Source: Perkinsus chesapeaki ATCC PRA-425 (Eukaryota > Protista > Perkinsozoa). Taken from it: DNA of 49,391 nucleotides. The DNA lies in NCBI GenBank assembly GCA_013115145.1, contig JAAPAO010000230.1, positions 1 through 49,391 on the forward strand, read 5' to 3'. A model generated the notes under the pieces. It did no database searches, was not told where the DNA came from, and saw only the letters and a list, made by a program, of their open reading frames with translations. How positions within the stretch are numbered: position 1 is the stretch's first letter; each line of letters starts with the position of its first letter. This document shows positions 3,014 to 46,099 of the stretch, in pieces. The translations under genes and the position numbers were made by a program.

Positions 3014-3919
3014 TTATGATGGGTAACCAAAACAACTGGATCACGGAGCCCGGTATAGTCCTCTACACGCCACGAAGAACGGCTCACTACTGTACAATCA
3101 AATGAGCAACAAGCGGTGACGTGATGATGCAGAAGTGGTGACGTGACTTATCTTGTGACAAGGGGACAGAACTTCGGTCATTAAACCTACTACATGACTA
3201 GATCTATAGCGGTTTTCAGTATGTATTCCACCTGCTCCGCACTGTCCGGTAGTCATATGCTCTCACAGGCAGTGCCTCCAGGAGGAACCTATGTAGTGCG
3301 ACTTGCACTGTGCGAGTTCTTGTATAACCTACGATACCAATTGATGCAGCTAAGAAGGGCTGTATGTCTTATCATGGATGACGCGCATAATACAGTGTAC
3401 TAAGCCAAAGAGTGTCTCTTTTTTGCAGACGCCATGACGATAAAGCAGCTGATGTTGGAATCGGCTCGCTGAATTTCCACATTGATTTTAGTGAGCGATT
3501 ACCTCGAATGGAGCAAGCCGCACACAAGCTTCAGCCATATGGCTTCCCGTTAATAGTTTAACGCAAGACTGCAATTTTGGTTGGCGTAGGAAAGAGACGG
3601 CCAAACCGGGACACTAACTCAGGTAATAATAAAAACCGATAGTCACTTGTAGCTTCTCATATAACACGCGTAAAAAAGGCGTGCGACCGAAAGTGTCAAT
3701 AAATGACTAGCCGCTATGACGGTCATAGTATGACCATATACAGCAGTACGTAATGCGCCCAGTGAAAGGTATCAATCTAACTACTCCAGAAAACTAGTAA
3801 AGGCTCAACCCCCGCAAATGAATGACCATCATCAGATTCGGCCTCTCAGCATCGGAGAGGTTGGCTTCTACAGTTTATTATCAGCAAACTCTAGCCAGGC
3901 TAGCTGAGCTAGCAGTCTT

Positions 3920-5999: not shown

Positions 6000-7138
6000 T
6001 ATTTCTAGGATACTCCAACATACCAAACGATGTATCAACTGCTCGAGGGGATCATGAAATTTCGTGTTGAAAAGTTTGAGTTCTTGATAGTTCCTCAACG
6101 AGGTTTCATAAGGGTCTCCACCAATATTCCATGACCTCGGCATAAGTTTATGAAAATTGCTGGAGCTGAGCGGGATATCATTTGGAATGCCGGAAGTAGT
6201 TTCAGTTTGCTTCTAGCGTACTTTCTGAATCAGAAAATACTCGGTCTGCTTTCGTTCATGAAGTGTGGGGATTAAACGACAATTCAAATGTTCAACATCG
6301 ATATAAGGTACATGTTACCCGCCGAAAGTACCATCCCTCCGATTTTAAAGCTTACCACTGTAGCGTTTCCTGAACGGTTTCTCGGTAGAGAGAACAGCAC
6401 ACGTTGGTCACCTGCTACGGTTTAGTACGCCGCCTGGAGAAGAGAATACTATTATCGTCATAGTGAAACCCTCTCAAACATAAAAAACATAACGAGAAAG
6501 CAGAATGCGCAGCCTCCGGAATTCAAAACATCCAGTTCCAGAGCACCATTTGGCATTGTTGAAGTTATTGAATTGAAGTTGCCATCTTCAAGAAAACGGC
6601 TTGGGTTGACGGCCTGTCTGGTAGAGTAGCCGATTTTCTACCAGGGCCAGTTAGTTTCTCTGACTCCTCTCCTTTGCTAAGGCCTCAGCCTTCTTCTTTA
6701 TCAGACATTGTTCTTCAGTATGATTCCTCTTGGTGCAGTACGTACAAACTGCACCAGGAGTACGTGGATATTCGCTCCTAATATTAGGCAAGCCGTATGA
6801 GGAAGGTCCGTATGGTGCGAACATGTTGATAAAGTAATTTTGAGAAACAGGTATTTCCAAAATCTCGTTAAAGTCCTCGCGGGGCTTCCTCGACGGGAGC
6901 CATTACGGCTCCCTCCACGCTGAAGTCGCCTGGAGTTACACGGTCCACTTCCCCCGTTCATTTCATCGCTATGAAGCTTCAGGGCGACAGTAAAACTGCT
7001 GAAATTCTCATCTTGATGGGCGTTCATCTTCCTCTCAAGAGCCCTCGTAGACTGAACAGTTCTGTCGCTCCATTCTCGAGCCTGTGAGTTGGTCAGACCA
7101 GCCTGGTCTCCACGCAGGCAATAGGCGCCATGATCCAT
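6000..7138 (-). mobile_element. Degenerate LTR-retrotransposon gag relic with CCHC zinc knuckle
   Basis: CTYCTKRNHTEEQC (C-x2-C-x4-H-x4-C) in 6651-6860. Gag-like HQDENFSSFTVALKLH in 6701-7138. The two parts are frameshifted. CA|TGGCGCC near 7124-7132 resembles an LTR end plus primer-binding site. The 3' boundary is uncertain. Confidence 0.55.
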
Positions 7139-13307: not shown

Positions 13308-15741
13308 TCATTCTTTCTTTCTCTTTCTCTTCCTGCTTGATTGACTCGAGCTCTTCCTGGGACCTCGTCCACCTCCCGATTTAGGGGTCAAACTAATGAC
13401 GTCACTCGCCGCAGTACCACTCGGCACTGCGGCCTTCCGAGCAGCTTTCAGCCAGGCATCACGCTTGAACAATCCAAGTTGAGCCATGTCCGTCTCGGAG
13501 GAGCCTGAGAACCCAAAAAGGTCGCAATTTTCCCCGAGATTGGCAACGGCGGCACTAATCGTTGGCCTTGCAAGGCTAGAAGGAACGATAGTATGATCGT
13601 TACCGAGTGTGTGGAGTCCTCGCCACACTGAGAGATCGTATCGACCGTCCTCTTCGACAAAGAATCTCACTTCACTCGCGATGTCATCTGGTAAGTTAGA
13701 CTTGAACTCTTGTTTAAATCGTTCAAGTACTCCGGGAATAAGGAAGAGGCCGCCTCCGAGTATAACCTGAGGGATTTCAGCCATGTGATAAGAGCCTTTA
13801 ACCAGCGCCCGATTAGTTCAGCTGGATAGAATGTCTGCCTACGGAGCAGATGGTCGTAGGTTCGAATCCTGCATCGGGTATTTCAAACCCCGTAAACCTC
13901 CAAACCCTTCTTTACCTTCTTAGCAACAGCGGACCTTGTAGCTGCCGGTGCCTTCATAACCGCTCCTGCAGCCATCTCTCCTAACCCTTCCTGCACTATC
14001 CCGATAGACCCGGGCTGCCAGAGGGCTTCACAAATGACCATTCGTTCGTGATTCAAGTCAACAAATTCTCCACTCGAATTTCCTTCTTCTATTTGAGGAT
14101 CGACCACTCGGCCCAAGTGGCTCGATGACGAGGAGTGATCCGGCAGGACATATCGTCTGATTGTCTCGCTGGGATTAGCTCGAGCTGCTTGGACCTCCTC
14201 CGCAAAGTTCAGTGCCGAATAGCACATATTCTCACGGATGTGCTCCACAAGAAGTGGCGCATCGTCAAGATCGACTTGGTTATACCTAAAACAAGCCCGC
14301 TGCGACTTGATCGTTATTGGACTTGCTACGCCAGAGCCTCCTTAAGATAATTAGTCATGACTCTTCCACCGACATCCATTCTTTGAGCGCAATGCTCCAA
14401 AGGATAAGTGTTGTAACTGAAGGTATCTATACAATACACTACTCCGCTGAGCTGGAAAGAGACCTCTGCGCGGAGAAGAAGCCAGTGACTAGTTCTAGTT
14501 TTTCTGTTACTCAACGGCTCACTTGTTCGTGAGCCTCTATCAACCTCATAGCCTCAGTGCACTAAGGCCGCCGAGCAGATCCCATTGTAGTTGTTGACGG
14601 ATGATCACAGCCTGTGAACTCTGTGATTAGTTGGTCCTGATGGTTCGAAATTTATGCTACCCTAGTATAAGAAGAAGAGTATCCAGAGTCGTAGTGTCCA
14701 ATAGAAGATGGAAGTATAACCATTTTGAAGGAAAAGTGGGTCTTGTAATATCTGTCATTTACAGAGGTTCGTACTAGATACCTCAAAGCTGAGGCCACAG
14801 TTATTACAGTGAGTGCCTGCTTCCCGAAGGAAGAACATGCTTTCGGATATTAACTAATCTCCGCCGTAACGAGACACCCGCCCATATTACACCGGTACCG
14901 CGCGGCAACCACTGAATCCCGCGTCGACGATGAGCCCACAGGGATTCCTCCACTCATCATCACCAAACTGCGATGTTATCCCCTGACTGAATTGAAGGCA
15001 TATCGGGGAGTCTATGAACAACGCTCGAGCGAACCCGAAGTCCTCGAAGAGAACCTGAAATGATCTGGTGGCTGGACCCGCAGGATAGAGCCTTCCCGAT
15101 CTACCTGCATACCGACTCTTGTGACCATCACTGGGCAGAACAACGGCTGTGAAACCAGCACGGTGACCTCCGAGAGATCCGTGCCCTGACATGCCATACA
15201 TTTCACAGATTCCTAACAACGGGGCCAGTAGCCCGATACTTGGTATTTTTTTATAAAATTCATAAAATGACTTTAAATTGAATTCTATTGCCGCCAACTG
15301 AGCGCAGAAAAGGTAATAAAAGCTTCGTACTCCGCACCCGAAAAGCCCAGGAATCCCATCGACAAGAGGGCATCACTTTTGGGAGTAATCCAGGCAAGAG
15401 CCGTCGACCATGTATAACTGCATCCCATATAATCTTCTCAGTTTCCCAATCAATAACAACGCCCTTATGGGAGGGTCTCGTCATCGTATACCTAACGCAC
15501 CGATGCCTTCCCTTATCAGTCGCTCGACCTACTCTGGACACGGTGTGATTTCCTTGCCTATTAACAGTTTGTTCTTTGCAGCTTTTCCTCCTCGCCGCGA
15601 TCGAGCTACCGCATTGGGTATCTCCGTTTCAGGGTAGATGGCATCTCCGTCGAGCGTGGAATTAACCAGACCAGCTTTGAGTGATCCACCACCATTGTCG
15701 ATGGTAACCACTATAGGAGCCTTATCACCACCGCCGACCAT
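13308..15741 (-). CDS. ARP6: Actin-related protein 6 (nuclear, SWR1-type), multi-exon, with basic C-terminal extension
   Basis: IDNGGGSLKAG; RPSHKGVVIDWETEKIIWD; VLVSQPLFCP; GLIVDAGFSGCRAVPV; RMDVGGRVMTNYLKE; RRYVLPD; LNHERMVICEALWQPGSIGIVQEGLGE; VILGGGLFLIPGVLERF; SVWRG. Introns resolved include 15492-15532 and 13767-13915. Confidence 0.8.
13807..13880 (+). tRNA. tRNA-Arg(ACG)
   Basis: Full cloverleaf: acceptor GCCCGAT/ATCGGGT, D stem GTTC/GAAT, anticodon stem TCTGC/GCAGA with loop CT-ACG-GA, variable loop TGGTC, T stem GTAGG/CCTGC with loop TTCGAAT, discriminator A. Confidence 0.93.
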
Positions 15742-16073
15742 TTAATTCACCAACAGTCCAATGTGAGTATATAACAGAAGATATGCCCCAAGTAAAGACA
15801 AACGTTAAATGCGCTTTTACGGTGGTATTATTGGCAACCCTAGTTCGCTTTTGAAGCCAATTAGTTCTTCCGCATGACAATCTGTTCCCTAGGAACCCAG
15901 GATCAATGGGAGCTTTTTGTTCTTCTCAATAATTAACTCTCAACCGACTGTGAGCGCAACATTAAAATTCAGCCTGTCCAAAAACGCCTGTGACGGTCAA
16001 CTCTTGGCGCGCGTGAAAAAAGGGCGACAATGACAAAAAAAAGGCGAGCGAGAAAAAAAAGTTGACAAGACGA

Positions 16074-16104
16074 GGAAAAGGGTTGCCTTCGGCAACCCTT
16101 TTCC
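16074..16104. repeat. Perfect 14-bp hairpin in the divergent intergenic region
   Basis: GGAAAAGGGTTGCC-TTC-GGCAACCCTTTTCC. Confidence 0.95.
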
Positions 16105-16126
16105 CAACCAGGGCAGTATTTTGCCC

Positions 16127-16165
16127 GTTCGATCCCCGGTGAGGATACTTTTCCGAATTTTTTTT
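16127..16165 (+). promoter_or_regulatory. Isolated B-box/T-arm-like element followed by T-tracts
   Basis: GTTCGATCCCCGGTGAGGATA, then TTTT (16149-16152) and T8 (16158-16165). No A-box, D arm or anticodon arm. Confidence 0.4.
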
Positions 16166-16691
16166 CGCGCTCCTTGCGTCCGGTCACTTTCACTCTTCGG
16201 GGCACTTCTTCTCCTGTTTGAAATGAAGTGCTCCGCATTCCACCGTACAGAAGGTATAGTATCCGTCGACTATTTGCGCGGTACTAGGAGGTCCTAGTAT
16301 ATGAACTCAACCCTTAGGGCTCATGCTCAGTAAACCATCTATCAAACTCACCTTGGTGTTCTCTTCCCGCTTCACGTGTGCCCTTTACGATTGAACGGTT
16401 GTCGACGAGCAGCTACATTTACTCTATACCCTTCAATTAGTAAGGCTTTCTTTGAGCCGAGATGAGCTCCGAAGCAATCATTTTTGCGCCGTCAGACTTT
16501 TTCCCACACCACAGCGGGGTCATAGGGGAACAACAAACGTTCCCTGAAGGAACATGGCAATTAGAGTCTATTTTTGCCCTGGAAGCATTCAATCAATATT
16601 TCTTGATTAATATTCTTGATCAATTCTTTATTAATATTTTCATTCAATTCATTCTATCAATATTTTTTAGGACATCTGGACCAGATGTGGA

Positions 16692-16742
16692 CCAAAATTG
16701 TTACTATTTACCAGATGATCTGGTAAATAGTAACAATTTTGG
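16692..16742. repeat. Perfect inverted repeat, 25-bp arms, 1-nt spacer
   Basis: CCAAAATTGTTACTATTTACCAGAT-G-ATCTGGTAAATAGTAACAATTTTGG, preceded by the echo palindrome ACATCTGG-A-CCAGATGT (16672-16688). Confidence 0.97.
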
Positions 16743-16770
16743 GCTCTCAAAAACACTATTTCCTGAATGA

Positions 16771-17256
16771 GTGCCTGTGGACACCGCAGCACTGGGAATT
16801 GCTCTAGTGAACTGTCGCACCCGAAAACTACGCATCCTCGCAAGCTTCGGAGAACGCGTATTTGTTAGTTTTGACTTTCATTATGTCAACTACTCTCACG
16901 CCTGCCCTTATAAGGATCACGCTTCGATCCAAATTCGCGGACGATACAGAATATCTTCAACAGGAGGTAAATCTGTATCACCTGCGTTCGCGTCCATCCG
17001 CTATCAGATAGCATCCCTCGTTTCATCCTTACTCCGGTCGACAAAATGTGCCATCACTATCCGAAGCTGTCGAGCATCTTCAGAGGACGCGTTGGTTACG
17101 ATGACACTTGCTATAGACTTTGCGAAGCCAGAGTCGGGTATGCGTGCTTATTCATGCCCCCTAGGAGACATTCTCGCCTCAGGTTCAACACAAACCCTCA
17201 ACAAGTTGTCGAAGAAGCTTGCAGAAGAAGCTCGAAGGTCCCAGGTGAGGAAATGA
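16771..17256 (+). CDS. Probable upstream exon(s) of the IQ-NHR gene, or a separate gene
   Basis: 161-codon open frame ending at a good donor (CCCAG|GTGAGG). Its join to the 17496 exon could not be phased. Confidence 0.4.
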   Translation: MPVDTAALGIALVNCRTRKLRILASFGERVFVSFDFHYVNYSHACPYKDHASIQIRGRYRISSTGGKSVSPAFASIRYQIASLVSSLLRSTKCAITIRSCRASSEDALVTMTLAIDFAKPESGMRAYSCPLGDILASGSTQTLNKLSKKLAEEARRSQVRK

Positions 17257-17495
17257 ACATCGTCTTTGAGATGGCGCACACTGTGCGCCAGTCTTGTGAG
17301 TTGTCAAGGTGCTCCGTTTATGTCGTAGTGGAAACTTAGTTTTCAAAGCTCCATCAGTGGTTCGTCTTGAGAGCGCACGAAACTCCCGAGGAATTCCACT
17401 AGACATCGAAGAAGGTCTTTTTGCAATTACACACACTCGATTGTCCCATTAATGCTGAAGACTGCGGCGCTTCTTAGGTTGCCGACGAAATCGAC

Positions 17496-20359
17496 GTGAA
17501 AGTCATTCGATTGCCTCAAACGGTTGACAGCATTGTATCTAAATCACGGCCACCTTCTCGCAGAGGTTCGAACCGCAGAGAGAGCAATTCTATCAGTCCT
17601 GAGCGATCTATTCTGAAACCGTCCCGAAGCAGCAGTCCGATTGGGTCCAAAACTCTGGGAGCACCCACCGTTCATTTTGCACCGCCGACGACCCTTCACA
17701 TCTCCGTGGAACGAGACAAGGGCAGGCGAAAATCGAAAAAGTTATCGTCCCGGAAGAGTTCGAGAAACCGTTCAGAAGTGTCAAATACTGATCTGATGGA
17801 ATCACTAGAGAATCTGCATCCTGCACAATCGTCGAAACACTCTAGAGGAAAGAAGCGAAGCGAGAAAAAGCGGGACTCGTCCAAGCGGAGCCCTTCGCTG
17901 CGGATAGTTAGGGACCAGGCTATGCTGGGCCTGGTGCCATCGTTTGAGCATGGGCTCGCGACGGAGAGCAAATACTCTACAAAACCTGCCCGAGAAAAGT
18001 CCGATGTGGAGGCCTGGAGAGAGCGCTGGAGGCGAACGCAAGCTGCTCTCAAGCTCCAGGCGATATTCAGGGGTAAAATCGTGAGAAAAATTGTAGACGT
18101 GAAAAACAAGCGACTGCGGAGGTTCCGAATCCTCATGTTGTGCGCGGCTCGAGCTAAGATACTTGCGTGGAATGTTCGGCGAAAAATAGCGGCAACGAGA
18201 CGGATGCAGGCCATTCACAGAGGCAATCAAGTTCGCAATAAAGTGTCCGAAATGCTAGCGAACCGACTTCGATCAGCGCTGATTCTGGTTCAGCGAGTTT
18301 GGAGAAAGCGGAGAGCTGCCGTTAAGATCCAATCGCGCTTCAGGGGTTGGCGTGATTGGATTCGGCTGAGAGAGATTATAGCTGGGGAGGGAACGAGACA
18401 GTTTGTTGTGAGGCAAAACCGAGATATAGTCCTCAAAGGGTTGTGGGGCGGTGGAGAGATGCGGGTTCGATTCCCGGTGGGGACATGTTGCCTCGTTTCC
18501 ATTAGCTCCGGGATGTGGAGACTTCACAAGGATGGTGAAGCCAGACCTGTTGGAGAGCTCAAGTTGCGAGGAGCCGGAAGAGTCTATTCTTCATCACTTT
18601 CCGTCATCTCGGTTCTTCCGCCCGTGGCGAGTAGGAGTAAGATCGGTCCGTTCAGCCAAGAGAAGTTCCTCTCGGTTGAATGCGCTCTTTCGAGCGGGGC
18701 CAGCGATGCCCTCACACTCGGCAACAGAGTGTTCTCGGTTAGCACTAAGGCGAAGAAACTCGTTATGTCCGACGCGAGCGGCGTCGACCGGCGGGAATAT
18801 GTCCTTCCGAGCGTGCACGGTTACGTAAGAATTTTCATGGAAGTTCTCAGTAAGAGCGTGGTGCGGCTCAGCCTGCAATGGGCTGGAACGAGATGGCTTG
18901 TCGTGAGACAGCGAGTAACTGGATGGGAAAATCCTCGAAATTTCAAACTTTCCGGCGGAGCGAAGCTCAGTCCGGCATGTCCTGTTATTCCCGTTGAAGT
19001 TGTTCGGGAGCAATTCCCCGACGGTCTGAAGAAATCGCTTCCCGATGTTGCGATGGTTCGGTCTGAAAAGGCGGATGCGAGTAGAAGGAATGTAGCGCCC
19101 AGACCAGAGGAGGAAGAGGTTTACACGATTAACAGTACCGAGTCGATGAGTTCGAGAGACAACCGCAGATCGAAGCGATCTGTCATATTGACGAGGTAGA
19201 GCATGCTTGCAATCTTACGGAATCTTGCAATTCCTCAACGATTTTCAGACCCTCACGACTCTCCGAGAAAACTCCGGCGAGAAATTCAACTCCGGCCGAT
19301 GCTATTATATCGGCGGCTGGAGTTTTCCGAAATTCCGTGGAGCAAATATTCGGCGCGCGCCAGGAAATTGGGGATAACACCAGCTACAGCAGCAGCAGCG
19401 TCTCATCTATCACGAGCCTGAGCAATAGCGTTCGTGGCCGGAGAGCTGCGATGAGAGGGTGAGCTGCATACGTTGATGCAGGCGGGCTGCATTTTATTTT
19501 TAGGGTCTCATCTTTGATATCGTGTAGAGGTAACAGAACTTCCTTGACGGCAGAGACAGATGAGCTCACCTGCAATGATCCTTGCGGGAGCACATGGGCC
19601 ATTACCACGGAACCTCTGCAGGAACAGCAAGGCCGGGAGATATACATGTAAAAATACCGTCCCCGGGGATCGAACCAGGAGTCTTCTGGATGCAGGTCGT
19701 TCAAGATCTCTGTTCGGGGAGCACAGACTTATCCGACGGACGATGGCCATCACGGCATGTTTGGAATTGGCTTCACCACCAATGATGAAATTGACGAAAT
19801 ACCTAAGAAGAAAAGTTAGTTCACCCGAGCCGCACGAACCTCACGCAGTTCCGCTCCGTTCAGGCGTCTGCCTCTTCGGGTATAACTTCAGCAGTCCGAC
19901 AGCAGAGTCTCGAAGAAAGAGTCTCGCCGGTCAATCTCGGATCCGGTACACAACTTTCTACGATGGCCGGGAATGGAAGAAGTTGGAGGACTCTCTTTTA
20001 CCTAAAGTTAACGACGAAGTTGAGCTGGTAGGTTGGGGTCTGCAAATCGGGATTTGACTTTGCTCTTCTCCTCAGGTTATCATGGGAGATCGAGTGTGCG
20101 TTCTTGTGAACGATTGGGCTGTATTTATCAGTGACGAGTTGGACCCGTCTTTGCTACGACGGATGAGAACGCAGCGCATGTAAGCATGTAGCTTCTGCTG
20201 TGAACGACCATTTGGATTCCCAGTTACGGTATCGTCGACCTCTGCGGAGGGCCGGTGTACGACGTTGCATGCGAGCTGAACACTGAAGTAGAGGCGACGG
20301 TTCTTCGAGCCCTCAAGGCCAAAGAACCAACACGGTTACTTCCAATGGGGGCCTCCTGA
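17496..20359 (+). CDS. IQ calmodulin-binding motif protein with C-terminal neuralized-homology (NHR)-like domain
   Basis: IQ motifs LQAIFRGKIVRK, MQAIHRGNQVR, VQRVWRKRR, IQSRFRGWRD. Frame-consistent exons ..19195, 19249-19458, 19504-19647, 19696-19814, 19849-20027, 20076-20179, 20224-20359 give YMSFKISV..GMFGIGFT..GDRVCVLVND..IYGIVDLCG (NHR-like). The true start lies upstream. Confidence 0.7.
19655..19695 (-). pseudogene. tRNA 3'-half-like sequence (positions 32-73) filling a 48-nt intron in antisense
   Basis: Minus strand: CT-GCA-TC-CAGAA-GACT-CCTGG-TTCGATC-CCCGG-GGACGGT-A then TTTTT. Spacing is exactly tRNA-like; one T-stem mismatch; no purine at position 37; no 5' half adjacent. Confidence 0.6.
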
Positions 20360-20776
20360 GGCCATGCATGGGCTTCTGCCACTCGAGCGATTTGCTCGGA
20401 TTAGATACGAATGGTGTCATTAGAATGCTAGTTTTGTGTTGTCACGAAAGTGGGTCTCGTTAACCGCAGCAGCTGGCGAGAATATCAAATGAGTTTTCAA
20501 TGCGCGCGTCCACACTAAGAGAACTTTCCTCACCACCAACGAACGTCAGAAGCCTTTGGGGGGACTTCAGAGGCAACACAGTGCTACAGAATACAGAGCG
20601 AAAGAAAAAACGGCGAACGTCACCTGAAAGACAAACAGCGGTGCAAGACCGAGAAACAAGAGAGTACGGCGAGGGCTAGAACGAAGCGGCTTTTTTCACA
20701 CTGCGCCGCGCAGCAAAGCGGGATTAGAAAATTGTCTTTGTGGTGGAGGCTTTATGCTTTTCGGACTTCTCAGGTC

Positions 20777-22081
20777 TGGGAGAGACTACCGCTTCTGGCG
20801 GTCGCAATCTGTGAAAGCGATGGCCGACCTGGAGCGTGCACGAGGCGACGAGATGGGGAGGATCTTGAACGCGCATACCAAGAAGTGCAGACTACCTTGT
20901 TGCTGTTAGAGGCTCACCTCAATGACAGATATGGTTCCTTGCGAGCTTTCATCCACAACAGAATGATAGAGCGGTATTTGCATAATAATGAGATATCGAT
21001 TGAACAAGAAGTGAGGCGAACAGGACCGAATCATGGGCTAATGATACCCTCGACCAGGCTAAGAGACAGAAGGCGCTGAACGTGGTGGCACGGATAAAAG
21101 AGAAGCGATTGGCGGAGCACAATCTTGACGGTATCAGACGACATGCGAAGGCTTATAGTGCATTGCTTGTTTTGCCAGCTCGCCGTGCAGCCACGGAAGA
21201 GAGTCTTCGCCACTTATCTAAAATGAATCAGGTAACGCTCATATCGAGGGTGTGCGCTGGACTCTCCGCCAGGCATATTTTCCTCACGAACGGAAGCTCT
21301 CTGGTGGGAGACAGACGGCCTGCGATGTTTTGGGAACGACGCGTGCTGTGGACCGGGCGAACTCGCTCCATAAAGCGGACACAGTAAGAGTCCGCCGAGC
21401 TTGAGCTCGATACGCTACCAAGCACCTTTCAGTTGAAAAAGAAGTGCATTCCTCGACCTCGAACCACTCTCACTCTATCTCATAGTAATTCGAGTGATGG
21501 CGAAGCGACGAACTTGCGGATGATTTACGAGAGGGCCCCCGCATACGGAAACGACCCCGATGCGGCAATCCGGAACGCCCTCGGAGATTATCGGCCAATG
21601 ACTGTGGGAGTTGTTGCAGGTCTACCCTAAGTGCTAGGATTGAACTAACTGTCTTGCGATGCAGATGCAGAGCAGGCGCTCTCACGTGCGCGAGGATTCC
21701 GAGGGGAAGTCGAGCGCTTTATAACAGCGGGTGAAGCGAAACTGCAAAGTCGATCAGCTACAATGCATAGTAAGTCGTTTGCTTGAGTACAGGTATCACG
21801 ATGCCTCATCAGGGAACTCTAGGAGCCCACTACAGAGATCGTCATCGGTAACGACTAGAAAGCCGTCTTTACCGGCTCCCTTCACCACTGACATGCTTCT
21901 CCGGCCTCTACTGTATGCCATCAGAAAGAGAGCATTGCGGGTCAATAACGTGTTCTCCTGTGCAGATACAATATTAGAGGCACTCCGCAACACGCCCCTC
22001 CGCTACGTGAAGACCTTCAAGGGCTGCTTGTGGGAGCTATGTGAACGCCACTTTATTTGCGATTCCTTTCATGTTTGGTGA
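20777..22081 (+). CDS. Hypothetical multi-exon gene
   Basis: Successive protein-like open frames (20732-21079, 21082-21387, 21433-21630, 21731-22081) separated by GT/AG signals; no family recognised. Confidence 0.35.
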
Positions 22082-22473: not shown

Positions 22474-23259
22474 TTATTGAGCTTGAGCTCCGGGACTCGA
22501 AAAGTTACCCTTAATTAGCAAATAATCATATTCTGATACCGTCACTCTAACCTGGGAGTCCCGAGATCCGGAAAAAGTTTTCCTTGCAGTTGACTTATAA
22601 TAACTGCGTTCACAGATGTGAGCCGCTTCTGACGAAATTGTCACATTCCGTTGTAGAGTGCCGAGAGGCACGATCGTATTAATACTCAGTAGACCAACAT
22701 CCTGTCCTAGAAAAGAGGGTTCAACATCAAGGGCTATGAGAAAGACGACCGAGTCATCAATTGAAAGGATGTGGCCAAGGCAAGGGTAAGCAAGACCAGC
22801 ACTTCCAAGTGAGATGCGATACTTTACTGGGAGTTCCGCATCTCCGTGAATGCCAAGGTCTATCCTTGATAGAGCTAAGATGTCTCCCAGTGCGTAAACC
22901 AGCCTAATGCTTCGAATACACACCTTCATCCACGAGGGATTATTCTTGATAGACACAGTGAAGTTTATGTTAGCGTACTGACCAGGGGCATCTGGGAAAA
23001 GATGATGGTCCGCCCAAAATGCTGGCCCAGGATCGAAGTTAGTAATCCCCACTGTCCAGTTGGAAATATAAGAACATGCCACGTAATGCTTGAACAATAA
23101 TAGTAGAAAGTTGAAGATCAAGTAGAAGGCAAAAAGACTCCAGAGCCATGTCAGAATCAACCGGCGGTATTTATGCTTGGTCCTATCAGTTTGAGGTGCT
23201 AACAGGAGAGCCGTAGTACACGGTTCATCAACAGCAGGTTGATTGGATGCAAGGAGCAT
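22474..23259 (-). CDS. Membrane-anchored LEA_2/WHy-like protein, paralog 1 (intronless)
   Basis: N-terminal TM (LILTWLWSLFAFYLIFNFLLLLF) followed by NINFTVSIKNNPSWMKVCIRSIRLVY, resembling the LEA_2 strand-NPN-strand pattern; colinear with two neighbours. Confidence 0.75.
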   Translation of the reverse strand: MLLASNQPAVDEPCTTALLLAPQTDRTKHKYRRLILTWLWSLFAFYLIFNFLLLLFKHYVACSYISNWTVGITNFDPGPAFWADHHLFPDAPGQYANINFTVSIKNNPSWMKVCIRSIRLVYALGDILALSRIDLGIHGDAELPVKYRISLGSAGLAYPCLGHILSIDDSVVFLIALDVEPSFLGQDVGLLSINTIVPLGTLQRNVTISSEAAHICERSYYKSTARKTFSGSRDSQVRVTVSEYDYLLIKGNFSSPGAQAQ

Positions 23260-24770: not shown

Positions 24771-25646
24771 CTAGTCGAGGACTACATAAGTCGCCATCCC
24801 AGCACCATTCGGGTTCCACACTTGCTCCACCTCGGTGGGCAGGCTCCGGTCGTTAAAGGTGCCATTGTCGGAGTGTAGAGCGCAGGTATATAGATTTTCA
24901 CATACATTGGTCACGTTCGGTGGAAGGCCGACCTTCTTAGCCAAACCGCCAAAAGACACGAAGCTACGCGTTTGCAGTAAATCGACATGTTGCCCGAAGA
25001 AAGCAGGCTCGACCTCCATGGTCAAAATGAAAGGGACTGAAGCATGTGATGAAAGAATGTGGCCAAGGCACTGGCAAGCGATCCTGTTGGTGCAGTGAAG
25101 ATAAAACCGGCGATGCACAGTGAGGGTGGCATCACCCGAGAAGATAATAGAGTCTGATAAGGAAATGGCCTGCCCGATCGCATATTGTAAGTCGATGTGT
25201 CGAATGTGTACCTTGAGCCATGAAGGATTACTCTTAATAGAAAGGGTGAAGCTGAAGTTAGCATACCGATCAGGAACTTGTCGGGAATTGGTGACCACCG
25301 GACGTTCTAACCACGATGTGTCCATCCACGGCACTGCTGGTCCAGGATCGAAGTTAGTAATCTCCAATGTCCAGTTCGAAATATAAGCACATGCTACATA
25401 CGACTTGAACAATAATAGTAGAAAGTTGAAGATGAAGTAGAAGGCAAAAAGACTGAAAATACAAGCCATTATCAGCTGGCCGAATCTACGTTTTGTCCGC
25501 TCAGCTTTAGATGGTACCAAGGGAGCTTCAGAGGACGGTTGGTTAGAACCGAGACGGTTGTTCCTCCAAGATGAGCGGGTGGGCAGGCTTGGAAGATCCG
25601 ACAGACGCGTGTGCAGTGAAGCGCTGCACCAGGCTATCGTTACCAT
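24771..25646 (-). CDS. Membrane-anchored LEA_2/WHy-like protein, paralog 2 (intronless)
   Basis: TM FSLFAFYFIFNFLLLLF; YISNWTLEITNFDPGP; ANFSFTLSIKSNPSWLKVHIRHIDLQY; CLGHILS. Confidence 0.78.
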   Translation of the reverse strand: MVTIAWCSASLHTRLSDLPSLPTRSSWRNNRLGSNQPSSEAPLVPSKAERTKRRFGQLIMACIFSLFAFYFIFNFLLLLFKSYVACAYISNWTLEITNFDPGPAVPWMDTSWLERPVVTNSRQVPDRYANFSFTLSIKSNPSWLKVHIRHIDLQYAIGQAISLSDSIIFSGDATLTVHRRFYLHCTNRIACQCLGHILSSHASVPFILTMEVEPAFFGQHVDLLQTRSFVSFGGLAKKVGLPPNVTNVCENLYTCALHSDNGTFNDRSLPTEVEQVWNPNGAGMATYVVLD

Positions 25647-26800: not shown

Positions 26801-27631
26801 TCAAACCCGTTTCTGTTTGACCCATTCAGCGGGGTCCAAAGGTAGGCCCGCAGTAAACTCTGGAATCGTTGTGACGGTAACCCCGGCCTGAAAGCTAGCT
26901 CTATCAATCGTGTCTCTGACTTCCTTTTCATAGAAAACCTCGCAGCCACGGGCCGCGTCTTTATCAATGCCCACACCACTAAAGCTCCGCCCGGAAACGC
27001 CAAAAGATACCAAGGCGCTCACTTCAAGTAGATCAACCGTGTGTCCAAATAATGAAGCCTCAGCTTCGAAAGTAGCAACACTGGGAACCGATTTTTCCGT
27101 CGCAAGGATATGAGGGAGGCAAAAATCCCTATACGCGAGATCTAATTGCTGCACAACGGTGATTGCGGTATCGCCAGAGAAGGCTATGTTAGCATGCGAT
27201 AGAGTCCCGATTAGTCCAATCCCGTAATGTAGGTCCACGTGACGGATATTCATCGTCAGCCATGAAGGATTATTCTCAATGGATAGAGTGAAGTTAACAT
27301 AGTGATGCTGGTCGGGAGCTTGCAGGAGATGGAATTCATCCAGAAAGCTCTCCGGCAATAACGGTGCTGACCATGGCTCAAAGTGTGTGAGCTCCACCTT
27401 CCAGTTCGAGATTAGAAAACATACTATGTGAAACTTAAATAACAGAAGCAGAAAGCAAAAGATCAAGTAGAAGCTAAAGATGTTCAATACGAACATTATA
27501 ATCAGCTGAATGTATTTATGATGTGGCCGATCAGATGTAGAGGGCGAGAGCGTGTTCAGCGTAGAGTTAACCGCAGCTCTGGAGAGGATCGGATGACGTG
27601 CGTCCTCCGAGGAGCAGCGCGATTCTCCCAT
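26801..27631 (-). CDS. Membrane-anchored LEA_2/WHy-like protein, paralog 3 (intronless)
   Basis: TM IFSFYLIFCFLLLLF; ISNWKVELTHFEP; VNFTLSIENNPSWLTMNIRHVDLHY; CLPHILA. Confidence 0.78.
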   Translation of the reverse strand: MGESRCSSEDARHPILSRAAVNSTLNTLSPSTSDRPHHKYIQLIIMFVLNIFSFYLIFCFLLLLFKFHIVCFLISNWKVELTHFEPWSAPLLPESFLDEFHLLQAPDQHHYVNFTLSIENNPSWLTMNIRHVDLHYGIGLIGTLSHANIAFSGDTAITVVQQLDLAYRDFCLPHILATEKSVPSVATFEAEASLFGHTVDLLEVSALVSFGVSGRSFSGVGIDKDAARGCEVFYEKEVRDTIDRASFQAGVTVTTIPEFTAGLPLDPAEWVKQKRV

Positions 27632-35228: not shown

Positions 35229-36617
35229 CTATTCAGAATCGCTCTTTCCGCATTTTAGGCGCCGCTGGGAAAATCGATTAGTGCACATCGAACACAGCGG
35301 TTCGCCTCTAAGAACGGGTGATGTGACGATGGGGGTGCACCGTCCAGCTGTGACTGACAAAACCGTCACAACTGTGAATTGCGAACTCGAAAAGTAATTT
35401 CGAGAATCGAGCTCTCCTTGTAAAGTTGCCAGAATTGTGGACAGCGACCCAAATGGCTTACCGGCAATTTCTTACGAGGCTCGGCTCGGCGCACATCCAC
35501 AATCCTGTCTTCGATTGTGTGCCCACCAGGAGATGCTTCCAATGTTCTCTGATTGTAAATCTCACATCCACCACACAAGAGGTCTACTCACGTGGACGGC
35601 TTCGGCATCTTCAAAGATAACAAATGCAAAGCCACGCGAGAAGCCGGCGTGATCGAGTGCCAGCTCACAGTTGACGATGTCACCGAACCTGATGCAAAGA
35701 TGCCAACACTGTACCCATTTCTGATCCCCGAGGGGGACGACCGTGAGGCAAGATGGCTAAATGATACTCACTTAGAGAAGTAGTCCACGACAGCTTGCTC
35801 TCCGGTCGCCGGGTTAAGACCACCAACAAAAATCTTCGTCTCGGTAACCTACACGTTTCCCATTCGAAAGGTCGCGGGCTCGATCCCCAGTGGCCTCACT
35901 TCATCAACATCTATATCCTTATTTCGAATCCTGTGCTTGTTATTAAAAAGTCTTGTAGAGTCACCGTTCATCAAAGTGACGAAGCCAAATCCACGTGAGC
36001 GTCCAGTGATCTACACAAAACAACAATGATGCTTAACAACCCATCCCCAAGCCCCATGTCCCCTGAATCTACTTAACGATAATAAAGGGAAAAGGTGAAA
36101 AGATGATGATGCAGACATGGCGGCATCCGACAAGTGTGTGATGGGACAGTGCATCATCATCTGCCCAGTATGCTTTTTACCTCTTCTACCGTTCTCTACT
36201 TAACACTGAAGCTATGATATATAAAAAGGACATTTCCTGTCATCAGCAGAACAACACAAATCTCCAGCCTGGTGAAATTCTGCCTTTAGCCCCTCGACCC
36301 ATCCCAGAATATTTCCCTTCCCGCTCGATACCGTACCTTATCCATTTTGATTTCAACCTCAAGGATGGCATCACCAAAAGCACTGAAGTAATCCCTTAGC
36401 TCAGCCTCTTGCATACCTTGGGGCAGACCACCGACGAACACCTATGAGCCAGACATGAGCGAAAGTCGGATACATCCGGCTCTCGACCAAGAGTGCTAAC
36501 AGTATGATGGCAATATTGCGTAGGATGCTTTCTCTTCAGAGTTATATTACTACATACACTGTTTTTTTTCTCGCACGTCCTCCTGACGAAACGGTCGAGC
36601 ATTGGCATGAGGGTCAT
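35229..36617 (-). CDS. Two-RRM RNA-binding protein (Musashi/hnRNP A/DAZAP1-like), multi-exon
   Basis: VFVGGLPQGMQEAELRDYFSAFGD..ITGRSRGFGFV..KHRIRNKDIDV; TKIFVGGLNPATGEQAVVDYFSKFGD..SRGFAFVIFED..HTIEDRIVDVRRAEPR. Introns include 35849-35899, 35689-35771 and 35549-35591. The 3' end is uncertain. Confidence 0.85.
35740..35759 (-). other. Spliced-leader-like sequence plus GT, inside an intron
   Basis: TAGCCATCTTGCCTCACG-GT vs the Perkinsus 22-nt SL 3' part TAGCCATCTTGGCTCAAG-GT (recalled): 18/20 identical. Confidence 0.45.
35868..35898 (+). pseudogene. tRNA variable-loop/T-arm/acceptor-like fragment antisense within a 51-nt intron
   Basis: AAGGTCGCGGGCTCGATCCCCAGTGGCCTCA; the first 21 nt differ by one base from a canonical AAGGTCGCGGGTTCGATCCCC tRNA segment. 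The T stem is only partly paired. Confidence 0.45.
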
Positions 36618-44229: not shown

Positions 44230-44925
44230 TTCAGCATCATCAACACCTCCTTGAAGTTCATGCTTGAGGACGGTTGAAGTTGTGGAAGGGACGGGCCGTC
44301 ACCCATCTTCCTCATGATGCTTTCCGCATCGTTCAGTAGTATTGAATGACCTAAGAAGCTTTTTGCTCTTAAGAATGTTCTCATTACTGCTACCAACACC
44401 TATCAAGGCCAAACAGCTATTCGTCTGGTCTTCCGTATTGATTACTGCAGACTATTAGACACTGCTAAGCGTTAGGACAGCTCAACAACCTGCAGAGGTC
44501 GGACTACGCTTCATCGATCTGCTATTTCACATCATTATCCGATATTGTTGAGTTTTTGAGTATCTATATAGAGCACACCTCACTGTTATCATCACAAACC
44601 AAGTTAGAAATAGCTGACCGACCTTAGGTCGGGATACCACATCTGAACTCCAAGTTGTGCCGAGTTATTGTACTAAGTCGATATAAACCTGTAACATCTC
44701 CGTTTAAGCTCGAGTGTAATGTTGGCAGTTCGTACTTGAAACCACGAGCGATCAATCTGGCTGACCGTTTCGAGCTACTAACGAACGGTTGCACCAAGAG
44801 ATCGGTAGCATCATTGAATCCATTCTTCATCCCATCACGAGTCGGTGGCTCATAGCGTCGATTTGACGCCGCCAGGCACATTTTCAGTGCATGGCGGCAC
44901 TGAAAATGCTGAACCCTCTCCAAAT
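44230..44925 (-). mobile_element. Possible Ty1/copia reverse-transcriptase relic
   Basis: SARLIARGFK resembles the copia KARLVARGF motif; the downstream frame has many stops. Weak. Confidence 0.3.
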
Positions 44926-44936
44926 GACGTATCTAG

Positions 44937-44978
44937 CCCTAAAAACTGAGAACCCTAAACCCCGAAACCTAAAAACCC
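44937..44978 (+). repeat. Degenerate CCCTAAA (TTTAGGG-type) telomere-like repeats
   Basis: CCCTAAAAA..AACCCTAAA-CCCCGAAA-CCTAAAAA-CCC. Confidence 0.5.
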
Positions 44979-45011
44979 AGATCCTGCCTGGTAGTCAGGA
45001 TAACAGCGATG

Positions 45012-45074
45012 CCTGGGGAGTTTAGCATTTGTCAACTATCTCAGAGATAGTTGACAAATGCTAAACTCCCCAGG
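45012..45074. repeat. Perfect inverted repeat, 31-bp arms, 1-nt spacer
   Basis: CCTGGGGAGTTTAGCATTTGTCAACTATCTC-A-GAGATAGTTGACAAATGCTAAACTCCCCAGG, followed by two copies of AGAGATA-G-TATCTCT (45081-45095, 45102-45116). Confidence 0.97.
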
Positions 45075-46099
45075 TTTTCTAGAGATAGTATCTCTTTTCC
45101 CAGAGATAGTATCTCTGACTCGGGTGTGCTAATAAGGATGACGGGTATCAATGAACGTCGTCCTTATTCCGCCTAGATACACTACCCGGCTCACTGCCAT
45201 ACTTAACGGTTTAAAGCGAATATCTTGTATTGGGTATCGTGGATATGTGGATGGCTAGATAGTTCGCTGTTCAAGTTGGAATCCATATCGGTGGTGTACA
45301 TCGCTCAGCCTTCTGGCTACAGTAACCGTATGATACTGTAATCTTCTTTCAGAAGCATGGTAATCCAGAGACCGTCCTCACTACACTCGAATGGGAACCG
45401 GCGTTGAACCCGCCTTATGCCATCTCATACGCAGGAGGGTTCCACACATTGACAGCAATTTACTTTGCTATGAGTATTGCATTCTGGCTAACCATCTGAT
45501 ATAACAGACTTCTCCGAACAACTAGCAAATCTGACTCTCTCCGTCCAGTCTCTGTAAAATGTAAGGTTTACATTAATTGTTGTTTTCCCATACCCTAGCC
45601 CTTCCGGCTGCCCTCGTGACCACTACCGCTGGGTGCTCTACGCTTTCCCGCCACACTCAACGTGAATGACCCACGACAACCGCTCAAGATTAGTTGTCTC
45701 AAGATTATATTAGACATTCGAAGATGTTGCTCCCTGTTATGAATTGTGCAAGGGAAGTTAACTCGTTCGTTCACAAAAACTGCGGCATCTTCTACGTATA
45801 AGTTCTGTCCGCTCAACTCGAGGGTAGTTCAGTCGTATATTGCGTTGTACTCTTACAATTATTATCTCGTACGGCCTATATGTAGATTGGGGATATAACT
45901 TAAAGCTTATCTCGCCGACCTCTGTCAGCTTTGTGTTACAGTATGAATCAGGTCCTACGGCAAGGGCCACCAAAGCCCCGGATCGCTGTATTCACAAGTG
46001 CCACTACGCGATTTGGAAACAATTAATTATTCATGTGTCTGTCGCTTTGCATAGTATGCAAATGTGACTTCATCGCTGATCAATCAGAGCCGATTACGG

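Follow-up and report, generated by a model that had tools for sequence, protein, structure and literature searches.

A 48-nt intron at an ancestral position in an IQ-motif gene of Perkinsus chesapeaki, with an interior likely derived from a multicopy, probably tRNA, sequence

The subject of this report is a short intron (positions 19648-19695) in an IQ-motif gene of Perkinsus chesapeaki ATCC PRA-425, located on contig JAAPAO010000230.1 (GenBank assembly GCA_013115145.1), the 49,391 nucleotides (nt) of which were analyzed in full and are referred to as the window. On comparison with three relatives, the position of this intron is ancestral in Perkinsus and its tRNA-like content is lineage-specific. 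The explanation we favor, to which we assign a probability of roughly 0.5, is that, in the lineage of the window only, part of a multicopy tRNA gene or tRNA-derived repeat, in antisense orientation, took the place of the interior of the ancestral intron. The initial annotation of the window had described the intron as the reverse complement of a tRNA 3′ half and had proposed that a tRNA-derived piece was inserted as a ready-made intron.

The intron and its host gene

The gene includes a 567-amino acid (aa) open reading frame (ORF) at 17496-19199, for which the best protein matches are from P. olseni at 53-55% identity, and the same gene is found in pieces in P. marinus ATCC 50983 and in a P. 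marinus-like Logan assembly. The window is too diverged from P. olseni and P. marinus to belong to either. Pfam identifies IQ motifs in the gene and, at a threshold of E<=1, has no match in the last 226 aa of the ortholog, which leaves the IQ half of the annotated "IQ-NHR exons" in place and the NHR label without support.

Splice sites were searched by aligning the P. olseni protein P0002 to the window and trying every GT/GC..AG pair. The best pair is exactly 19648-19695, with a score of 396 against 368 for the runner-up, and thus coincides with the intron as first annotated. If the segment is read through, a TAA at 19649-19651 falls in frame; once it is removed, as expected of a U2-type intron, an open and conserved frame is restored (..EIYM/SFKISV..) that aligns without gaps to the P. 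olseni ortholog (..EIYQSFKVLV..). By this comparison with the ortholog, from which splicing is inferred, the 48-nt intron is real. The intron, its exons and its splicing signals are as follows:

19648-19695, plus strand: GT-AG spliceosomal intron of the IQ-motif gene, 48 nt, phase 2 (split codon AT/G)
19528-19647, plus strand: upstream exon, ..TDELTCNDPCGSTWAITTEPLQEQQGREIY followed by AT of the split M codon, from the spliced alignment to P0002; its 5′ end is ambiguous (19504 or 19528)
19696-19814, plus strand: downstream exon, G of the M codon followed by SFKISVRGAQTYPTDDGHHGMFGIGFTTNDEIDEIPKKK, from the spliced alignment to P0002; 78.6% tblastx identity to P. olseni
19648-19654, plus strand: weak donor GTAAAAA, which on the minus strand reads TTTTT-AC, the supposed RNA polymerase III (Pol III) terminator/trailer
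19671-19675, plus strand: CGAAC, the sole branch-point-like pentamer read from the sequence, a 4/5 match to yUnAy that overlaps the T-loop complement
19685-19695, plus strand: 3′ splice-site region TCTGGATGCAG, covered by no contig piece (see below) and without homology support

The same P0002-guided search places five further introns of 44-69 nt in the gene (19196-19248, 19459-19503 or 19459-19527, 19815-19863, 20028-20075, and 20180-20223), with the donors GTAGAG, GTGAGC, GTTAGT, GTAGGT, and GTAAGC. The second A of CGAAC is 21 nt from the 3′ splice site, inside the 15-30 nt range for yUnAy, and this pentamer, as the likeliest candidate, may be the branch site. The acceptor TGCAG is common to this intron, to the orthologous intron of P. 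olseni and to a candidate intron at 21620-21664. There are no terminal repeats, inverted ends or target duplication at 19648-19695, where the flanks read CAT/GT..AG/GTC and only GT follows both junctions. With an ORF-bridging filter, an ab initio intron catalogue of the window comprised 85 candidates (38 when the sequence was reversed) and missed this intron, and a spliced-ORF dynamic program run on the window chained either almost nothing or everything, being non-discriminating because the codon bias is only ~0.17 bit per codon.

Age of the intron position

A phase 2 intron interrupts the same codon in all three of the other Perkinsus assemblies:

L001, 7954-8005: P. olseni, 52 nt, split codon CA/G
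L110, 3835-3939: P. marinus ATCC 50983, 105 nt, split codon AG/G
L111, 314-437: P. marinus-like Logan contig, 124 nt, split codon AG/G

None of the three has detectable similarity to 19648-19695 (local-alignment p 0.56-0.98; global p 0.59), and the T-arm-like motif described below is absent from all of them on either strand. Intron gain fails as an explanation because a phase 2 intron of unrelated sequence is present at the same codon in three relatives, the very pattern that the initial annotation had named as telling against its proposal. The position is likewise shared, and not lineage-specific as would be looked for in an introner.

Two points concern the P. marinus ATCC 50983 locus itself. 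The 174-aa model Pmar_PMAR015945 (L110 4001-5282) begins inside the conserved C-terminal domain but continues as sequence unrelated to it, and the later exons of this domain were not found on contig L110, a pattern that would fit a faulty gene model or a break in the assembly.

tRNA likeness of the minus strand

From 19684 to 19648 the minus strand reads AGACT / CCTGG-TTCGATC-CCCGG / GGACGGT / A / TTTTT-AC, and its parts can be compared with those of a tRNA gene:

19680-19684, minus strand: variable-loop-like AGACT, the 5′ limit of the part with relatives elsewhere in the genome
19663-19679, minus strand: T-arm-like and B-box-like 17-mer CCTGG-TTCGATC-CCCGG (exactly GGTTCGATCC) from a strict T-arm scan, with one stem mismatch, T51.C63
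19662-19656 and 19655, minus strand: acceptor-3′-strand-like GGACGGT and discriminator-like A, both putative and read from the sequence, the pairing 5′ strand being absent

The 17-mer has all of the invariant T-arm positions (G53, T54, T55, C56, G57, A58, and C61) and four of the five stem pairs. It also provides a perfect B-box, GGTTCGATCCC, in agreement with the form GGTTCGANNCC and outside any functional tRNA. Because what is present is the 3′ third with a trailer in place of CCA, the sequence resembles a DNA-level copy of a tRNA gene.

The likeness is less complete toward the anticodon. An anticodon loop of 7 nt with U33, a purine at 37, a 5-nt stem strand and a variable loop of 4-5 nt is not formed in either register, one of which gives a 4-nt variable loop with a pyrimidine at 37 and the other a 5-nt variable loop with a 6-nt anticodon loop. 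The caveats attached to the initial annotation (one T-stem mismatch, a non-purine at 37, an ambiguous isotype) are all borne out, and its derivation of the acceptor AG from C32-U33 amounts to the complement of the AG that any intron must have. ARAGORN detects no tRNA at 19648-19695, and the folding energy of the intron is no better than that of shuffled sequences on either strand (z 0.45 and 1.42).

Three identifications were considered and rejected. The supposed Cys anticodon, GCA, is part of the common TGCAG acceptor. A long terminal repeat primer-binding site would carry TGG, the complement of CCA, where here a discriminator and then the A-run/T5 are found. A target site of Dada transposons does not fit, since Dada targets the A box and not the T-arm region.

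Relatives of the intron core elsewhere in the genome

Contigs from two DNA runs of the same organism, X3 and X4, were placed on 16060-22050 (5,991 nt) at 80% likeness. Leaving the contig of the locus aside, X3 contributes five short foreign pieces, and three of the five lie on the intron core:

19640-19680: 34/41 identical, on a 10-kb contig; begins 8 nt within the exon
19652-19684: 30/33 identical, on a 6.9-kb contig
19654-19684: 27/31 identical, a 31-nt unitig at depth 500 versus a single-copy depth of 110 (~4.5x)

The same variant (G>A at 19681, or T for C on the complement) is present in X4 at depth 1361, in contigs that reach at least 124 nt beyond; because of this reach, the multicopy relative sits in a long repeat of at least ~250 nt and not in a 48-nt unit. 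Two related contigs have a G at 19656, so that the acceptor strand becomes GGACGGC-A with a C72 fitting a G1-C72 pair. Since other contigs of the same organism match the core at 19652-19684, and one of them is multicopy, real descent is likely, and the intron interior likely descends from a multicopy, probably tRNA, sequence.

The extent of this homology is narrower than first described. On the donor side the pieces reach into 19652-19654 and their other limit is at 19680-19684. Because no piece from X3 or X4 covers 19685-19695, the supported homology corresponds to tRNA positions ~44-76 and not to 32-73. The exact spacing reported over positions 32-73 is not confirmed, and the part read as 32-43 is an ordinary 3′ splice-site region; neither can it be maintained that the intron contains nothing other than tRNA sequence, as the acceptor region 19685-19695 is not tRNA-derived.

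A parent tRNA was sought in metagenome contigs. The exact T-arm plus acceptor pattern gave 0 matches. A looser pattern of 18 bases, combining T-loop and acceptor, matched 107 stretches, most of them bacterial DNA other than tRNA genes, among which were five tRNAs, none of them close to the intron; three of these five real tRNAs, with acceptor GGACGGC-A, are tRNA-Phe, which is a lead only, the isotype of the intron being ambiguous. No tRNA is present in the fetched loci L001 and L002. Within the window there is no second copy of the intron, the only match being an exact one of 13 nt at 16127-16139. The intergenic stretch that contains it (16126-16147, plus strand: GTTCGATCCCCGGTGAGGATAC, then TTTT) shares the exact 13-mer with the intron antisense and is 19/22 identical to exonic 18465-18486; a full tRNA is not present there.

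Run X4 also holds a second version of the locus (17673-20033) at about half depth and with about 14-15% nucleotide divergence, which may be a divergent haplotype or a second strain. It aligns without indels through 19648-19695 and does not align through the introns at ~19459-19527 and 20028-20075.

Origin of the intron interior

The replacement that we favor would have occurred in an old intron of the IQ gene that evolves fast in all lineages. A tRNA gene or a fragment of one would have landed antisense in this pre-existing intron, and deletions would then have returned the intron to the minimal size typical of the gene (44-53 nt), unless the intron kept that size throughout. What would remain is a fragment at about 19650-19684 (~33 of the 48 nt) comprising the variable loop, the T-arm, the 3′ strand of the acceptor, the discriminator and the first part of the T-rich trailer. 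The relic would now be only intron filler, with the complement of the trailer lying in the weak donor and the complement of the T-loop as a possible branch site. The starting situation of this scheme can be seen in the same window. An intact tRNA-Arg(ACG) at 13807-13880 (plus strand), ~6 kb upstream, is nested antisense in a 149-nt GTAAAG..CAG intron (13767-13915) of a minus-strand ARP6-like gene, with 40 nt of intron separating its 5′ end from the host acceptor (13767) and 35 nt separating its 3′ end from the host donor (13915), and we count this neighbor in favor of the replacement. Of the original proposal, the tRNA-derived interior thus probably stands by virtue of the relatives, and the insertion of a ready-made intron is contradicted by the ancestral position.

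Several observations weigh against the replacement. The RNA runs, including the two of this species, which are small, gave no contigs on the gene. The Rfam tRNA covariance model finds no match at E<=10, either in a search of 551 nt or in two end-truncated searches starting from position 32 or 44, although the tRNA-Arg of the window, when cut at the same two points, is detected (22.4 bits, E 0.004; as a tRNA-clan match, E 0.015). The T-arm alone is not beyond chance, because the strict scan returns six T-arm-like 17-mers in the window (five outside the real tRNA) versus 2.2 expected from shuffles; one of the six is the tRNA-Arg, and two lie in coding exons of the IQ gene, one of these being kept as coding in three species. 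The searches described above yielded no parent tRNA, and that the multicopy relatives are tRNA genes is no more than probable, from their anatomy, resemblance and copy number. Foreign contigs also match an exonic T-arm-like stretch of the IQ gene (18454-18498, see below) at ~87% with open frames as flanks; these are probably paralogs, and such matches need not mean recent tRNA descent. Finally, insertion followed by deletion is a route that we infer, and it would take at least two events that each preserve splicing.

The same negative covariance-model result with positive controls, together with the other T-arm-like matches in the window and the ambiguous isotype, can be read as a sign that the likeness is fortuitous. 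A fast-evolving short intron may simply have acquired a B-box-like 10-mer; the AG that every intron must have, the common TGCAG acceptor, a donor rich in A and the freedom to choose a register would account for the remaining resemblance. With 785 windows of the genome read, some coincidences of this kind are to be expected, and the 107 metagenome stretches with the 18-base pattern lie mostly outside tRNAs. The contig relatives make this improbable, their matches lying far outside what random 31-33-mers would give: with the T-arm granted and the acceptor strand also matching, we estimate the chance of matches such as 30/33 and 27/31, one of them multicopy, in an assembly of ~45 Mb at under ~1%, and it would be odd for three of five foreign pieces on a 6-kb stretch to fall on this one intron.

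We consider similarly unlikely that the intron belongs to a mobile, introner-like family made from an antisense tRNA 3′ part, spreading as a whole intron by reverse splicing and recombination or by transposition, and that it replaced the older intron exactly at the existing junction. Such a replacement would explain how a foreign sequence comes to sit at an ancestral position, and it agrees with a tRNA-like sequence that fills nearly the whole intron and supplies the donor side with its end, as well as with the existence, elsewhere in the genome, of single-copy relatives numbering at least two or three. Homology from end to end is not observed, though, as the 3′ 11 nt lie under no contig piece and one piece begins 8 nt within the exon. 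The high-copy relative occupies a repeat of at least ~250 nt, and terminal repeats, a target duplication and a second copy in the window are all missing. Neither Perkinsus nor tRNA is mentioned in two introner surveys (PMC9860276, PMC12130899).

Other tRNA-like elements in the window

A 51-nt intron of an RRM gene (35849-35899, minus strand) contains an antisense tRNA-like part, AGGTC-GCGGG-CTCGATC-CCCAG.., which may be tRNA-Ile-like. The P. marinus-like contig (L111 ~3570-3620) keeps this part as GCAGG-TTCGATC-CCCGC; the first 36 nt, which are tRNA-like, are 27/35 identical, and the last 15 nt are 7/15 identical. The flanking exons are 80-83% identical at the nucleotide level and encode near-identical peptides, from which we estimate that synonymous sites are ~45% identical. 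Judged by these identities, the relic in 35849-35899 is old and constrained, and since its tRNA-like part is conserved in the P. marinus-like contig, such relics are a real feature of the genus, a point that we also count in favor of the replacement.

The exonic stretch at 18454-18498 (plus strand) of the IQ gene has a perfect B-box/T-arm-like core, GGTTCGATTCC, and is the best-conserved part of its exon. It is 91% identical to P. olseni (L001 ~6530-6574; the counterpart in L002 is at ~6800-6844). Within it, the 36-nt segment at 18456 reaches 97% identity to P. olseni, and a third Perkinsus contig is near-identical there, whereas the exon as a whole is at 61% and third codon positions are at 42%. 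The contrast suggests constraint on the nucleotide sequence itself.

The candidate intron at 21620-21664 (plus strand) lies in a likely gene of the same strand; it is an in-frame segment of 45 nt that has GT..AG ends, contains two stop codons and finishes with GATGCAG, as 19648-19695 does. Its antisense strand has a T-arm-like GTTAG-TTCAATC-CTAGC with all four outer stem pairs, overlapping a perfect CTAAC branch site. Multicopy relatives of this segment are not evident among the X3 and X4 contigs, and no ortholog of its gene was found in the fetched loci. The folding energies of the tRNA-like introns are unremarkable.

These elements bear on a further possibility, that 19648-19695 is a selected intragenic B-box/T-arm module, seeded by a tRNA gene and working as DNA (eg, as a TFIIIC-binding site like the extra TFIIIC [ETC] sites) or as RNA. 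This would be compatible with replacement of the interior of an old intron, and it draws on the perfect B-box of the minus strand, on the contrast in conservation within 35849-35899 and between the exonic stretch and its exon, and on the indel-free alignment of 19648-19695 to the divergent X4 version, to which two neighboring introns do not align. It is attractive for the sister elements, and we regard it as improbable for this intron, as none of the three orthologous introns contains the element, which lacks the conservation of ETC sites, has one stem mismatch and no A box, and folds no better than shuffles. The least probable explanation by far is the one offered as an alternative in the initial annotation, a split-tRNA half, or else a minus-strand transcript that supplies a functional tRNA 3′ half, for which only the B-box-like motif and the T5 after the discriminator-like A can be adduced, with no A box, no 5′ half, negative ARAGORN and covariance-model results, a T-stem mismatch, an irregular loop register and no counterpart in relatives.

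Two other features of the window may be recorded. Three tandem paralogous ORFs on the minus strand (22474-23259, 24771-25646, and 26801-27631) match a single 218-aa gene that adjoins the IQ gene in P. olseni, which suggests a local expansion in the lineage of the window. At 44920-45120, degenerate CCCTAAA-like repeats of telomere type precede a long perfect palindrome (..TTTAGCATTTGTCAACTATCTC / GAGATAGTTGACAAATGCTAAA..) and a series of AGAGATAGTATCTCT repeats.

Comparison with known systems

The closest parallel is with intronic tRNA genes and pseudogenes, which can lie antisense to the host gene and are represented in the window by the intact copy in the 149-nt intron. The difference is that here ~33 nt fill almost the whole of a minimal intron, with no A box or anticodon arm and a negative covariance-model search. 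Short interspersed nuclear elements (SINEs) keep a 5′ tRNA-related head with A and B boxes, followed by a body and a tail. Fragments of tRNA-derived SINEs resemble the present case as B-box-bearing, tRNA-related sequences of many copies that are tolerated in introns; the intron differs in having a tRNA 3′ part with its own trailer and no SINE body.

To our knowledge, no introner is nearly as short as a 48-nt unit. Introners and introner-like elements are described from Micromonas, fungi and dinoflagellates (PMC9860276, PMC12130899). Like them, 19648-19695 has relatives in its own genome and the element could bring splice signals; unlike them, it occupies an ancestral position, is free of terminal repeats and target duplication and shows no end-to-end copies.

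The ETC sites of yeast are isolated perfect B-boxes without a functional tRNA, as is the motif in this intron, and the sister elements in the genus are conserved at the nucleotide level. In contrast to ETC sites, the Perkinsus elements are intragenic and not intergenic, are candidate binding sites, and include, in 19648-19695, a copy that is not conserved.

As the Dada DNA transposons of P. marinus show, which target tRNA genes at the A-box TAGCTC (PMC3706591), the genomes of Perkinsus contain tRNA genes in hundreds of copies along with mobile DNA linked to tRNAs. This stock would be a plausible source of scattered tRNA fragments. Dada insertions are in the A box and not near the T-arm, and no Dada sequence adjoins the intron.

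Implications

Taken alone, intron 19648-19695 provides no evidence that introns are created by tRNA halves. If tRNA-gene fragments regularly take over the interiors of minimal introns, this would be an unreported source of intron sequence turnover in Perkinsus. It would at the same time be a caution for studies of intron gain, namely that a repeat-derived, foreign-looking intron can occupy an ancestral position.

A broader idea is put forward here tentatively, and we would not bet on it: Perkinsus may maintain tRNA-gene-seeded intragenic modules that are kept by selection, either as TFIIIC-bound, ETC-like sites or as units passing from intron to intron, of which 19648-19695 would be a young, lineage-specific member at an ancestral position. 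Such modules would comprise tRNA 3′ parts that lie antisense, keep the B-box intact and occupy most of a minimal intron, in addition to at least one B-box-like stretch of coding exon. In its favor are the nucleotide conservation of 35849-35899 and exonic 18454-18498 across species and the genome relatives of 19648-19695. That the window contains both an antisense tRNA-like intron that is conserved and a B-box-like stretch of exon that is ultra-conserved raises the idea that B-box elements within RNA polymerase II genes may be functional in this lineage of oyster and clam parasites.

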